DNA of 5,775 nt from Amoeboradix gromovi X-113 (lineage: Eukaryota; Fungi; Sanchytriomycota). Below, one piece after another: positions 1 to 5,775 of this stretch. Under the pieces are notes generated by a model. It was not told the origin of the DNA, made no database searches, and saw only the letters and a list, made by a program, of their open reading frames with translations. The stretch's first letter is position 1; each line of letters opens with the position of its first letter. Location of the stretch: NCBI GenBank assembly GCA_018985225.1, contig JADGIF010000629.1, positions 1-5,775 on the forward strand, written 5' to 3'. The position numbers and the translations under genes were made by a program.

Positions 1-26
1 GGATGAAAGAGTAAGAGAATAGCTGT

Positions 27-220
27 ACAGAATATTTATTTTTGAAATTTCGATACAAAAAGTTATTTATAAAAGTTGTTTATTTTCCTTTTATACTCGT
101 CAATTCCGCAACTAGCTGAATGTCCACTCGTCTCTTAAATCCATAAAATTAATAAAGCTGAAATAATGTGCCAAGTTGTTACAGAAAGTTGTCCAGTTTT
201 TATATTTGATGTCCCGTTTG
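27..220 (+). repeat. Left copy of a long imperfect inverted repeat bounding the window
   Basis: 27-42 (ACAGAATATTTATTTT) is the exact reverse complement of 5760-5775. 87-212 aligns to the reverse complement of 5759-5634 with 8 substitutions and 2 single-base indels (manual alignment). Similarity fades over 213-220. Bases 43-86 are absent from the right copy. Confidence 0.95.
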
Positions 221-264
221 GATATTTGCTTTAAAATAAAATGCGAAATAGGACAAACTCGGCA

Positions 265-347
265 GCTCCATTGGCCTAGCGGTTAAGGCATCGAGCTTAT
301 ATGACTAAGATTCTCGGGGATCACCAGTTCGAACCTGGTATGGAGCA
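265..347 (+). tRNA. tRNA-Ile (anticodon TAT) with a 10-nt canonical intron at 302-311
   Basis: Full cloverleaf. Acceptor stem GCTCCAT(265-271)/ATGGAGC(340-346), discriminator A347. D stem GCCT/AGGC. Anticodon stem TCGAG(291-295)/CTCGG(313-317). Loop CT-TAT-A followed by intron TGACTAAGAT after position 37. T stem ACCAG/CTGGT with TTCGAAC loop. No encoded CCA. Eukaryotic Ile-UAU genes typically carry introns. Confidence 0.95.
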
Positions 348-352
348 TTTTT
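348..352 (+). terminator. RNA polymerase III oligo-T terminator
   Basis: TTTTT directly after the tRNA discriminator base. Confidence 0.75.
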
Positions 353-422
353 AACACTTTGGATTTTCGTTTTCTCAAGATTGGCGGTTAACAAGGAGAT
401 TGAGATAAGAATTTTTATTACC

Positions 423-1040
423 TTAAAGAACCATATTATCATTGCAACCACGAAGCTTGAGTATTTTGGAAACGTGTTTTTTAATTTCAGTCCTCAATGT
501 TTTACCAAACTCATTTACAGCATCAATAGTAGAAACATTCTGGAGTAGAGAATCAATATGAACAGGTGTCTGAACATGAAAACCTAGTATCTTTTGATTT
601 GAAATAAACCAGGTAACTGTGACTCCTGATTGTTCCTCCATATAATTAGGATCTAGTAAAATGGTTGGAATTTCTGAATGCATATTTTGAATACCACTAT
701 TAAGCGAAAATATTAGGTCTTCCATGACAATTCCAGCGTCTGCAATAGCTAATGATACACAATTCACGCAACAAGCTAATTCACTACCATCTTTTTGGAG
801 TAATGTTATATCTATATGAGCAGGGTTTTGCATCCAAGGTAAGAACATACTTTCTATTTGCTTTAAATGTTCGTTGTTTGTGGGATTTGCTGTAAATTTA
901 GTTTCTAAACTAAACGTTACAGTTACCATTACTTTTGTTGAGCCCAATTGAAAATACGCGGATCCATCAGCCTCTGACATGCCTAGCTTGATTCCCATTT
1001 GTCTGTATTGATTTGGTAATCTTCCGTCGATGCGATACAT
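423..1040 (-). CDS. RRP41: Exosome core RNase PH-like subunit, Rrp41/Ski6/EXOSC4-like (divergent, shortened, 205 aa)
   Basis: N-terminal RIDGRxxxxxR, ADGSAYFQLGSTKV, IDITLLQKDGSELACCVNCVSLAIADAGIVMED and LDPNYMEE match RNase PH/Rrp41 motifs. The specific paralogue (Rrp41 vs Rrp46/Mtr3) is less certain than the family. Confidence 0.8.
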   Translation of the reverse strand: MYRIDGRLPNQYRQMGIKLGMSEADGSAYFQLGSTKVMVTVTFSLETKFTANPTNNEHLKQIESMFLPWMQNPAHIDITLLQKDGSELACCVNCVSLAIADAGIVMEDLIFSLNSGIQNMHSEIPTILLDPNYMEEQSGVTVTWFISNQKILGFHVQTPVHIDSLLQNVSTIDAVNEFGKTLRTEIKKHVSKILKLRGCNDNMVL

Positions 1041-1461
1041 TTCAAAGGAGGTTCCCCATTTTTTGCAATAAACTCATATCTCTTTAAAATAAGTCAATCC
1101 ATACTTAACAGGGCATAACATCAGAAATTAGGGCATTCAAATTGAGAGATGACTTTTTCTTGAAATTAAATTTTCATCTTAATTAATTCTTGTATCTCAA
1201 CAACTCTTCAAGACACTTGACTTTCGAGAAAATCAAGGAATTTCAGCTGGAAAATGGGTAACCGGTCCCAAAATATTTTTGAGTGCAAGTTAGATGTGTG
1301 ACTGTTAAAATTTCCAAGAATACTTTGGCAGTTGACACTAAAACCAAAAGATGTAATCAATCCCAATATCGGCGTGGGTTGGAATGAATTTTTAAAAAAC
1401 ACATGGTTTTCGAATTTCCATGCCAACAGAACGCGACATAATCCACTTTTCAGAATTCCAC

Positions 1462-2586
1462 ATGATTTTCGTTGAAAAGTGTTCAGTTTTGATATTTATC
1501 CTCGCACAAGTTTACGGGGTAGTTCTTGATGACTGTGATAATGTTATTTATTTAGCGAAAAGCTTAAACGTGGACATTAAACAACCAGCGCTAATGTCTC
1601 AAATAACTACAGACTGCTGCAACTCAGTAGGGATAAAGTGCAACACAAGATATGTCTTTGAAATTGACTGGAGAGGACTAGGTTTAAACGGATATTTAAA
1701 CTCTAGTGCTATTCCGTCAAAAATACTGCGGTTAGATCTTGGAGCTTATTATACTAAAACTAATAACATATCTGGTACTATAGACACTTTGCCTAGTAGC
1801 ATTACGGATTTTTGGGCGGATTCAAATCGGCTAAATGGGACAATTCCAGAGTTACCTGTGACAATGAAACTTTTTGTGGTAGATAACAATAGGTTGTCTG
1901 GAACATTGCCCAGGCTTGAACATTTGGATAATTTGGTTGCATTATCGGCAGATTACAACAATCTTGGCGGTGATATTCCTGTTTTGAACTCAGCCTTGCA
2001 GTATTTATCGGTCAGAAGCAACATAAACTCTGATAATAGGTTTTCAGGAAGTATAATAATGGATAAACCCATAATGTTAGCCATAACTTACAATTGGATC
2101 GCAGATGTGGTATTTGGTGACACTAGCCTTCTAGAATATTGTGATTTGTCTTACAATCCCTTATTAGACCTAAGCGGTAATTTCACTTTTTCAAAATGTA
2201 TTAAAATGGGACTTTACCGTGCGTCTTCAGTACCTTTTACAATTTCGTCAAAACTGGATGTCTCAATGATGTCTGATCTCAGAATGGCCAGTAAAACAAC
2301 TTTTTCTTTGATGAATCCGGCCACAAGTCTAAGTTCTTTCTCAGAAACTCATTGTGCTACTACTGCCGCAGAAACTAATATTTTATCAGAGGTGTACATA
2401 CCAAGCATCGGTGGCATTCTCGTATACGTACTTTTTGCAGGACTAGTTTTTCTGGCTTTGTTAATTCTGCTTTTAGCAAGTTTGACAAGAAAGCCTGAAT
2501 TCATATCAAAATTTGGAAGAAAAAATAGTTTTGCAACGTTAAACACGGTGAACACAACTCGAACAGGGCAGAATGTAGCCAAATAA
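1462..2586 (+). CDS. Type I single-pass leucine-rich-repeat receptor-like membrane protein (ORF is open from 1420; ATG 1462 preferred)
   Basis: From 1462: signal-peptide-like MIFVEKCSVLIFILAQVYG; Cys cap DCCNSVGIKC...VFEIDWRGLGLNG; about 6-7 LRRs with NxLxGxIP motifs (NNISGTID, NRLNGTIP, NRLSGTLP, NNLGGDIP, NRFSGSI, CDLSYNPL); Ser/Thr-rich stalk; hydrophobic helix at 2407-2484; basic 33-aa tail with no kinase domain. Confidence 0.88.
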   Translation: MIFVEKCSVLIFILAQVYGVVLDDCDNVIYLAKSLNVDIKQPALMSQITTDCCNSVGIKCNTRYVFEIDWRGLGLNGYLNSSAIPSKILRLDLGAYYTKTNNISGTIDTLPSSITDFWADSNRLNGTIPELPVTMKLFVVDNNRLSGTLPRLEHLDNLVALSADYNNLGGDIPVLNSALQYLSVRSNINSDNRFSGSIIMDKPIMLAITYNWIADVVFGDTSLLEYCDLSYNPLLDLSGNFTFSKCIKMGLYRASSVPFTISSKLDVSMMSDLRMASKTTFSLMNPATSLSSFSETHCATTAAETNILSEVYIPSIGGILVYVLFAGLVFLALLILLLASLTRKPEFISKFGRKNSFATLNTVNTTRTGQNVAK

Positions 2587-4086
2587 ATCATGAATTGATT
2601 TCAAAATAAACTTTATTAAAGCAGACGTCATTGATCATTGAAAATGTCTGTCAATAACCTAGAGGTCATTTAGGCATATTTCTCTTTATTTTGACCCTCG
2701 TTGTACTGCTTGACGTCCATCTGTAAATGCTAAAGAGAATAAAGCAGATATTGTTAGTAACTCTAGACTGAAACACACTTTCTATTGATTCTGAAAGACT
2801 TGGCTGACAATGTAGCGAAATAAGTGATGTGCCGTATCTTTGACGTATAGAAAATGTGATAAATTACAGCAAATTTTTTCGTACTATGCTAGTTCTAAAA
2901 GTTCGTTTAGAATAGTTTGCATAAATTTTGCAGAGTGTGATCAATATATGAAGCCCATTCTGGCAAAATGTTTTCATCTCTAAGTAGCAGAAACACCTAA
3001 AAAGAGCACTACGAATCTGACATCTTCATGTTATCAGATACGAAGGTTTATCAGAAATAAAAAGCGAAGTACTTTGGAGACGACAGACAAAAGAAAGACA
3101 TTCAGATCCTGCCTTGTTTGTGAACGAAACGACATTACAACATCAAGATAGAATATGAAAACAGTTATCGGCTGAGATCTTGCAGCATATGCTCAAGTGC
3201 TAATCAGCCAAGCTATTTTGAAAGATACGTTGCCAATGCATTTTAATATTGAAACTATAAAAAGTTGTTTAATAACCTGAGTTGCATCATGAAAGGTCTC
3301 TTTGATCTCTGGTACTGTATTAGTTACACTAAAATTGTATATCAGCGATTTAAGCATGCAAGTAACAAACCGGAACGAAAGGTGAGAGAATTGCTAAATA
3401 TTACACACCTAATTAAATTCTTAATCTCAATTGTCAAAATCTTGGTTTCCCTGAGAAATTCACAAAGCGTTTAATTATTTACTTACTTTTTCACTACTTT
3501 GAGACTGAATTGAGTAGGACGCATACATTTGAAGTGGTCTCTTTACTTTGAATGTCAATTTGCGCATGTCTCCAAATTGGTGTTAGTTGCAGTCCTACAA
3601 ATTGAACACTTTTAACCAAGTTCCTAATTGGATTACACCAATGGCATTCCTATATTTTGTGCTTGAGCTTGAAGCGGTAATTAGCAGAGGAATGAGGGTC
3701 TATCAAGGATTTTAGCTATTCCTTATTGAATTTCTTGATACGAGATATTTTAAGAATATCTACAGAGAAGCAGAATAAGTGAGCACATCGGCCATCTTGC
3801 TACTATATTACTTGTCGAAATTCCTACCTCATGAAATGCGTTTTACTGAAAAATCTCATTTGATAATTTCAATGAGTTAAACAGAATCTTCTCTTGAGTT
3901 TTGCTGATTACCTTTACAGTTTATGTCTGGTTCACTTTATTTTTTTCAGGCAAGTAGAAAAAGATAATATCATGTTTTCCATTGAACGTTTCTAGAAATA
4001 TAGTCTACTGTAGGTAGTGAGATCAATGTAATCATAGCAAATGGTTTATTCGTTAAAGTGCATTTTAACTTTAACTTTTTTGTAAC

Positions 4087-4515
4087 ATGTCCTATTTATT
4101 GTATCAGCTTACAAATGCATGGCAAGTCGATCAGGCAATTGTATCTGAAGAGAGCAAATTAGTAGTGCTACGGTTTGGACATAATGAGCATCCTGATTGT
4201 CTAATAATGGATGATATATTAAGTTCCATAGCAGAAAGAATAAAATTATTTGCTGCTATATATTTGGTAGACACACGGCAAGTGCCGGACTTCAACGATA
4301 TGTACGAGTTGATTGACCCATTTTGCATAATGGTATTTTTTAGAAATCAGCATATCAAAATTGATTTAGGAACCGGAAATAACAATAAAATCAACTTTGT
4401 CATTAACGATAAACAAGAGCTAATTGATATTTTAGAGCTGTGTTATCGCGGTGCTTATAAGGGTAAGGGATTAGTAGTATCTAACAAAGACTATTCTTCC
4501 AAATTTGAATATTAG
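4087..4515 (+). CDS. DIB1: Spliceosomal U5 snRNP thioredoxin-like protein Dim1/Dib1 (TXNL4A), 142 aa, intronless
   Basis: Canonical length and motifs WQVDQAI.SEE, RFGH, IYLVD...VPDFN.MYEL.DP, IDLGTGNNNKIN, YRGA.KG.GLVVS.KDYS. Confidence 0.97.
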   Translation: MSYLLYQLTNAWQVDQAIVSEESKLVVLRFGHNEHPDCLIMDDILSSIAERIKLFAAIYLVDTRQVPDFNDMYELIDPFCIMVFFRNQHIKIDLGTGNNNKINFVINDKQELIDILELCYRGAYKGKGLVVSNKDYSSKFEY

Positions 4516-4640
4516 TTTTTGAATTCATGCCTTTGGCATCAATAGCGCTAAATAAACTGTTTCCAGAATAGCCGACATTTAATTTGAGTTTTTCAAAATA
4601 GTTAAAATTGGAAATGATTATATAAATTTACTATGGTACT

Positions 4641-5577
4641 TTACAAGAAGTAGTCTGGTGTTCTTCTTGTAACCTGCGGCTCTCCCTTTCTTGGTGCTGG
4701 ATCAAATTGCAAAAACTCGTATTTCATCTTCTCGTCAAATTCCATGATTGCAGCTTGATTTCCACATCTATAACAATAATTAGGTGCCGAAAAGATAGTA
4801 ACTACGTTTCTGTCATGCGCCCATGCGTATCCTTCCATTACCAGTTGATGGGCTCTAGCCACCAGTGTTAAATTATTATTGTGGTTGAAGGCTTCACTAA
4901 TGTCTTGACCAAATGTGTATCCAGCACCTCTAGGAGATATTCCCCAGCCACATCTTTCATCAGGGTCGCTCCATAGTAAATCACACCTAAATAAAAATAA
5001 GATACATTGGTCCTTCGTGGGGAATTTCTTGAATTCTGTCCAGGGATTTGATGTGATCTAACAAATCAATAGAAGGTGATAGCCCACCATGCAAACAGAA
5101 TATCTGATCTTCTACCAACGCAGTTAATGGCAAATAATCGAACAAATCGGTAAAGTATTTCCAAACATTTGCGTTGCCATATTTTCGTAAGCACTCATCA
5201 TAAAAGCCATAGACTTGCGTAATCTGTCTGGATTCATGATTACCGCGGAGTATAGTGATACGGTGAGGGTATCTTACTTTCAAGCTAACTAACAAAGAAA
5301 CAGTTTCAACGGAATAATATCCTCTGTCAACGTAGTCACCCATGAACAAGTAGTTTGTATCAGGAACGAGGCCGCCAATTTTAAACAGTTCCAACAGATC
5401 GTGCAATTGACCGTGAATGTCACCGCATATAGTAACTGGAGCCTTGACTGGCTGGACATTGCTTTCCTCGATTAATATCTCGCGTGCCTTCTCACACAAA
5501 AACTTGACTTGATTCTCTTTAAGTAGCTGGCAGTTCATTAGCGTGGAAATACAAACCTCCAAATCTTGAGTATTCAT
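4641..5577 (-). CDS. PPP2CA: Serine/threonine protein phosphatase 2A catalytic subunit; two exons (5577-5006, 4986-4641), 305 aa
   Basis: PPP motifs GDIHG, GDYVDRG, RGNHE, SAPNY and the PP2A C-terminus RRTPDYFL. Removing 5005-4987 restores [31 protein letters not shown]. 572+346=918 nt, i.e. 305 codons plus a stop. Confidence 0.97.
4987..5005 (-). other. 19-nt spliceosomal GT-AG intron (phase 2) in PP2A-C
   Basis: CCA AT|GTATCTTATTTTTATTTAG|G TGT GAT. Excision restores the frame and the conserved sequence exactly, with no residue gained or lost. Confidence 0.92.
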
Positions 5578-5625
5578 AACTTTGATTCTTTTGTTTCAGA
5601 ATTGGAGGAGATTTAAATATAAAAA

Positions 5626-5775
5626 CACATGGAACATCAAATATAAAAACTGGACTAACTTTCAGTAATAACTAGGAACATTATTTCAGCTTTGTTAATT
5701 TATGGATTTAAGAGGTGAGTGGACATTCAGCTAGTTGCGGAGTTGACGAGTATAAAAGGAAAATAAATATTCTGT
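5626..5775 (-). repeat. Right copy of the inverted repeat (runs off the window end)
   Basis: Its reverse complement matches 27-42 and 87-220. The match continues to the last base of the window. Confidence 0.95.

Follow-up and report, generated by a model that had tools for sequence, protein, structure and literature searches.

A five-gene contig of Amoeboradix gromovi, very probably bracketed by two insertions of an abundant repeat with Fanzor1 kinship

The contig JADGIF010000629.1 of Amoeboradix gromovi X-113 carries five genes between two non-coding sequences that are inverted copies of each other, which raises the question of what kind of DNA molecule or mobile unit, if any, these copies delimit. 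An earlier note on this DNA had proposed (a) a linear mini-chromosome or programmed-fragmentation unit, (b) a Pack-like element bounded by terminal inverted repeats (TIRs) or an invertible segment, or (c) an assembly break at two copies of an abundant dispersed repeat. A mini-chromosome, or a TIR element that carries genes, would have represented an unusual genome architecture. The window, i.e., the whole stretch of 5,775 nucleotides analysed here, is the complete contig (C911) of an assembly of 10,549,678 bp and 1,319 contigs. The published assembly (10.5 Mb, 36% GC) is based on Illumina sequencing of single cells after whole-genome amplification and was produced with SPAdes in single-cell mode (PMC8371127). 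As set out below, the window very probably consists of a unique 5.4-kb gene block between two independent insertions of one high-copy transposon, termed family A, the contig ends stopping inside these insertions since this repeat could not be resolved during assembly.

Inverted arms, repeat copies and contig breaks

The arms at both window ends were examined by a repeat search, pairwise alignment and a scripted global alignment of the window sequence. The repeat search retrieved four colinear inverted pairs, namely 27-42/5760-5775 (100% identity), 79-147/5699-5767 (96%), 146-190/5657-5701 (89%), and 191-220/5626-5655 (90%). Global alignment of 87-212 with the reverse complement of 5634-5759 (126 nt, 8 mismatches, 2 gap columns, 92.1% identity) reproduced exactly the 126-nt core with 8 substitutions and 2 indels described in the earlier note, and the presence of inverted non-coding sequence at both ends was borne out (1-216 and 5630-5775). 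A 44-nt block (about 35-78) was present in the left arm and absent from the right one. The left arm (1-216, minus strand) represents the left-end (LE; 5') part of a family-A element, as indicated by its alignment with 15 internal copies and by BLAST identities of 94-96% to other copies. It includes window positions 1-26, since the alignment with internal copies revealed that these bases are homologous to other genomic copies too, so that the contig ends truncate both arms. Its TIR is located at 191-216 (minus strand), the tip at position 216 facing inward and the body running past base 1. Similarly, the right arm (5630-5775, plus strand) corresponds to the LE side of another family-A element, inserted independently and belonging to a subfamily without the 44-nt block, with its TIR at 5630-5655 (plus strand), its tip at 5630 facing inward and its body running past base 5775. 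As both TIR tips point inward, each element continues past its contig end, which places the five genes between two insertions instead of within a single one. The description of the block as bracketed by terminal repeats thus holds for the inverted repeats and not for the terminus, which is an assembly boundary instead of a biological one.

The two arms were not each other's closest relatives. Each arm was 95-96% identical to copies on other contigs, compared with approximately 92% to its partner, and the best matches of the right arm were found on other contigs (95.2% identity to a copy on contig C875). The 44-nt block also divides subfamilies of the repeat, the gap of the right arm being common to a long copy on contig C33, and the arms were no more alike than random members of family A. 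In line with the earlier note, no third copy of the arm family was present inside the window, the repeat at 2942-3255 being a different dispersed one.

A search of the assembly with the left arm yielded 804 first-look candidates, of which 40 were scored (87-96% identity). Furthermore, a 20-nt TIR pattern (at most 2 mismatches) occurred at 819 forward and 861 reverse sites, while the reversed control pattern occurred at none in either direction (0 + 0). These approximately 1,680 TIR ends therefore correspond to roughly 840 elements, present in both orientations and enriched at contig ends. The common form of family A is a TIR-bounded miniature inverted-repeat transposable element (MITE) of approximately 520 bp, with the 26-nt TIR TGGGACAYCAAATATAAAAACTRGAC at both ends. 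In the alignment of 15 internal copies, this form was bounded by TGGGACACCAAATATAAAAACTAGAC... on one side and by ...GTCCAGTTTTTATATTTGATGTCCCA on the other side; the internal copies ran approximately 300 bp past the arm sequence to the second TIR, and each of them had unrelated sequence on both sides.

The flanks of the elements were asymmetric in composition. Among 45 LE flanks retrieved with blastn-short, both window arms included, C occupied position -4 in all 45 and A position -3 in 44, with mostly A at -5 and variable bases at -2/-1. In the window, the left copy is flanked by CCAAA (217-221, minus strand, read outward from the LE tip) and the right copy by ACACA (5625-5629, plus strand, upstream of LE), both with the invariant CA at -4/-3, so that the motif is kept as CCAAA followed by CGGGAC at the left arm and as ACACA followed by TGGAAC at the right arm. 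The right-end (RE) flanks displayed a weak A-T-A bias only (n = 31). This CA motif may reflect the target choice of some transposase or a requirement of the target-adjacent motif (TAM) type. As regards a possible 2-bp target-site duplication, a by-eye comparison revealed matching bases beside both ends in 7 of the 15 complete copies, which is above chance and far from universal.

The position of family A relative to contig ends was assessed by comparing the terminal 700 bp at either end of contigs sampled at even intervals with family references (33 contigs of at least 1.3 kb). Of the 66 termini, 25 (38%) lay inside family A, with the tip toward the contig interior in every case; family A covers only approximately 4% of the genome (about 840 copies of approximately 500 bp). 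In addition, the left-arm matches at contig starts were all on the plus strand and those at contig ends all on the minus strand. Contig starts were often found approximately 200-215 bp from the LE tip, where deletion derivatives diverge, a position at which a de Bruijn assembly graph would branch. At a frequency of about 0.38 per end, approximately 14% of the contigs are therefore expected to have both ends in family A, half of those as inverted brackets, and the same bracket was indeed encountered on other contigs (LE/LE on C29; RE/RE on C54 and C533). Many other copies lie within contigs, surrounded by unrelated unique DNA on both sides. The interior of the window (230-5620) was single-copy, except for an unrelated repeat of 310 bp, and a scripted scan for telomere-like repeats (TTAGGG-type runs) found none in the window.

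Coding remnants of family A

The nature of family A was approached through the coding remnant of its MITEs, which on the strand opposite to the left arm of the window reads ...YTSKKCNVCENE...RKCTFCLDA-RPHIFERDAGSSSFILKRG. Pfam searches with these MITE-borne remnants of an open reading frame (ORF) gave no match at E ≤ 0.01, PF07282 reaching only 15.5 bits at a relaxed threshold. Searching the assembly with the remnant peptide located long copies, the rare gene-bearing members of the family, of approximately 1.7 kb, which carry the gene of a Fanzor1-type nuclease (RNA-guided, the TnpB-like type of eukaryotes). The copy on C33 (L054:2730-4391; 1,662 bp) possesses both TIRs, and its ORF is split by a frameshift (151 + 291 amino acids, about 440 in total). 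The copy on C1157 (L053:3-1310) has a frame of 436 amino acids, open up to the contig start, the other end of which adjoins the RE TIR. In these long copies, the arm sequence (TIR plus approximately 190 bp) sits between the LE TIR and the start of the ORF, upstream of the Fanzor ORF, indicating that the window arms represent the LE/5' side and not the omegaRNA side. The off-contig remainder of each element would hold the C-terminal remnant of the nuclease and the right end, where the guide RNA would start. An open frame of 325 amino acids on C665 was rejected as a family-A gene, as it is a read-through into a neighbouring EF-hand gene.

A search of 1.84 billion cluster representatives retrieved only 16 homologues of the family-A ORF (E ≤ 1e-3). 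Several of these have a length of 585-642 amino acids, and the more distant ones pass the cut-off of PF07282. The homologue alignment contained the motifs G-DPG (GIDPG), WG-G, NE-xTS-C--C (NE-YTS-C--C), and ERD. A profile of the ORF and its homologues matched Fanzor1 of Guillardia theta (9CER; E 1.6e-15) over approximately 460 positions and, more weakly, Cas12f, TnpB, and SpuFz1. Single-sequence phmmer of the ORF against the PDB gave no relevant match. The seven best Foldseek matches of an AlphaFold2 (AF2) model of the ORF were all Fanzor structures (SpuFz, GtFz, and PpFz; E 6e-7 to 3e-4), with SpuFz in the lead (E 6e-7 to 3e-6) and an identity of 11-12% in the fold alignment with SpuFz. The Fanzor link was thus made by profile search and fold search only. 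Based on the profile match to GtFz1 and the fold matches of the long-copy ORF, family A is considered a Fanzor1 element with abundant ORF-less derivatives.

Alternative origins of the bracketed block

Copy number, geometry, contig-end enrichment and arm divergence all support the dispersed-repeat explanation of the earlier note, and we consider it very likely that the 5.4-kb block lies between two independent insertions inside which the contig ends stop. The block itself is very probably ordinary chromosomal DNA, neither a mini-chromosome nor a mobile unit. A few points weigh against this interpretation and against the accompanying assignment of family A. The sample of contig ends was small (33 contigs), and that the chromosome continues past the two arms is an inference instead of a direct observation. 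In addition, the family-A ORF scored 20.9 and 24.3 bits with PF07282, just below the curated cut-off of 26.3, an intact full-length family-A Fanzor gene was not found in the assembly, and the AF2 model was modest (mean pLDDT, the predicted local distance difference test score, 56.5; core about 70-80).

Taken together, the divergence of the arms, the subfamily block, the flanks proper to each arm, the single-copy interior, and the lack of telomere repeats speak against a mini-chromosome and a fold-back chimera, and also against a locally duplicated inversion or a block moved jointly by both copies. Conserved subterminal repeats of a linear mini-chromosome, or of a programmed-fragmentation unit, would explain why the contig starts and ends in the same inverted sequence, but this sequence occurs about 840 times, many copies being internal to contigs with unique flanks, the tips point inward, and each arm is cut at an arbitrary point within the longer element, as are 38% of the sampled contig ends; hardly any credence can be given to this explanation. 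Whole-genome amplification is known to create inverted chimeras. As this genome was amplified before sequencing (PMC8371127), a fold-back chimera produced by the amplification or by the assembler has to be considered as well. It is equally close to being excluded, as 8 substitutions, 2 indels, and the 44-nt block set the arms apart, and as each arm has its own flank with the CA motif and matches a different subfamily, which upholds the argument of the earlier note that non-identical copies speak against such an artefact.

The option of a TIR-bounded unit can be understood in two ways, both of which fare poorly. Two inverted copies might move the block by means of their outer ends, as in a composite transposon, or the block might be Pack-like cargo inside one element. 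Two inverted transposon copies do flank the block, and extra genes between the inverted repeats (IRs) of some Fz loci have been reported (Saito et al., PMC10432273). Moreover, an element on C154 (L138, 76-1834) displays an outward configuration, in which an RE-type TIR (76-106) and an LE-type TIR (1803-1834) enclose an ORF of 395 amino acids encoding a non-Fanzor protein (SLFN_AlbA_2; Pfam, 51 bits). This ORF is single-copy, with only diverged paralogues elsewhere, and the arrangement could be a Pack-like capture of cargo or two solo TIRs brought together by chance; cargo-bearing derivatives may thus exist. In the window, however, the tips point inward, leaving the genes outside both elements, the block is single-copy, and the similarity of the arms, which stem from different subfamilies, is no greater than among random family members. 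Furthermore, with about 840 randomly oriented copies in 10.5 Mb, half of the neighbouring pairs are inverted by chance, so that a composite or Pack-like unit is very improbable here. An invertible segment, in which homologous recombination between the approximately 92% identical arms would flip the 5.4-kb block in some cells, is even harder to credit. The block does lie between inverted repeats of 150 bp or more, and any such pair is physically able to recombine, but evidence of a second orientation was lacking, the arms displayed no concerted evolution (92% identity to each other versus 95-96% to other copies), and no recombinase was found in the block by ORF listing and Pfam, the earlier note having seen no transposase, integrase or polymerase. 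It is likewise very doubtful, although hinted at by the arrangement on C154, that family-A ends can mobilise foreign DNA and that inverted neighbours, such as those beside the block of the window, might at times behave like a composite element or serve as a substrate for inversion; if true, Fanzor1-ghost elements would drive the rearrangement of gene blocks in a very compact genome.

Block genes, unrelated repeats and comparison with known elements

The gene calls of the earlier note were recovered by Rfam or Pfam for four of the five genes. A tRNA gene with an intron of 11 nt is located at 265-347 (plus strand; Rfam RF00005, 54.2 bits, E 6.5e-10). Its anticodon loop, CUUAUA, points to a probable tRNA-Ile(UAU). 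This intron-bearing gene was detected by Rfam, whereas ARAGORN in bacterial mode reported no tRNA in the window. It is followed by the genes for an RNase PH-domain exosome subunit (Rrp41-like; 423-1040, minus strand; Pfam PF01138, RNase_PH, 63 bits), for a protein of 388 amino acids with leucine-rich repeat (LRR)-like repeats and a C-terminal hydrophobic segment (1420-2586, plus strand; ORF list and sequence pattern), for DIM1/Dib1, the thioredoxin-like protein of the U5 small nuclear ribonucleoprotein (snRNP) (4087-4515, plus strand; Pfam PF02966, 199 bits), and for a PP2A-type catalytic subunit in two exons (4641-5577, minus strand; Pfam Metallophos, 117 bits). The LRR label follows from the sequence pattern only, as the 388-amino-acid ORF had no match to a Pfam family at E ≤ 0.01. 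The PP2A gene contains an intron of 19 nt (4987-5005; GTATC...TTTAG), the removal of which, as read from the sequence, restores the frame ...HEGPM joined to CDLLWSDP.... The element tips lie upstream of two genes, at 48 bp from the tRNA gene (216-265) and at 52 bp from the start codon of PP2A (5577-5630), so that the insertions fill nearly the whole upstream spacer of both genes.

Besides family A, the window contains a right-truncated, degenerate copy of a third dispersed repeat (2942-3255, plus strand), recognised by alignment with 7 copies and by translation. This older repeat matches at least 47 genomic sites (73-86% identity). The surrounding stretch of approximately 1.5 kb (2590-4086) lacks any ORF of at least 70 amino acids, which is unusual for this compact genome. 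The plus strand of the repeat reads CLVCE...(frameshift)...CSICSSANQPSYFERYVANAF, a decayed CxxC...CxxC...ER- tail of the TnpB/Fanzor type. Most PF07282 matches of a genome scan that were considered as the window repeat were rejected, since they belong to family B, a separate ghost family of approximately 600 bp (e.g., L033:1236-1833) without the TGGGAC TIR. Family B has about 150 scored sites genome-wide (560 candidates), and its TnpB/Fanzor C-terminus is well preserved (at most 74 bits with PF07282; ...NESFTSQTCTRCG...CTNCHLKIDRDHMAARNIYIK). Similarly, a frame of 672 amino acids on C542 (L039, 1-7000) was rejected as a relative of the arms. On the minus strand of this contig, an ORF for an IS607-like serine recombinase (3399-2770) overlaps or is fused with a TnpB-like ORF (3491-1476), the Fanzor2-type, apparently open frame of 672 amino acids displaying the motifs GxDPG and CxxC...CxxC...DRDHLAARNI. 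No significant BLASTP match linked the family-A ORF to the C542 ORF or to family B.

Among known systems, family A shares several features with the Spu-1 Fanzor1 ghosts of Spizellomyces punctatus (Saito et al. 2023, PMC10432273). Both have a conserved body of approximately 520-550 nt bounded by inverted repeats of approximately 26-30 nt, no transposase was found between the IRs of either, and in both cases copies without a nuclease ORF far outnumber the gene-bearing ones, the latter encoding a Fanzor1-type RuvC/Zn-ribbon nuclease. In addition, a conserved CA is present just upstream of the 5' IR in Spu-1 elements (PMC10432273), as it is upstream of the left-end IR in family A. In contrast to Spu-1, family A occurs in a different fungal lineage (a sanchytrid-like host), its protein is very divergent, and no intact gene copy was found in the A. 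gromovi assembly. Its density is far higher too, with about 840 elements in 10.5 Mb versus 134 ghost loci (PMC10432273) in the 24.1-Mb genome of S. punctatus (PMC8371127). Compared with a whole Spu-1 element, the window arms comprise only the LE side and not the omegaRNA side. Family A also resembles contig-breaking MITEs in being short, non-coding, TIR-bounded, and high-copy, with contigs ending inside copies and unique flanks inward, but differs from them by its one-sided, invariant CA-N2 flank, as in elements of the TnpB/Fanzor type. With Pack-MITEs and composite transposons, the window has in common that two inverted element copies flank host genes, but its termini point inward, its cargo occurs only once in the genome, and nothing suggests that the copies were mobilised jointly.

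The window contributes no omegaRNA, no intact nuclease, and no evidence of mobilised host genes, and contigs that start and end with the same inverted sequence are to be expected in the A. gromovi assembly. Family A is a very abundant and very divergent family of Fanzor1 ghosts, new within a known kind of element. Through its left-end CA motif and its architecture, it extends the Spu-1-like system to a sanchytrid-like fungus.

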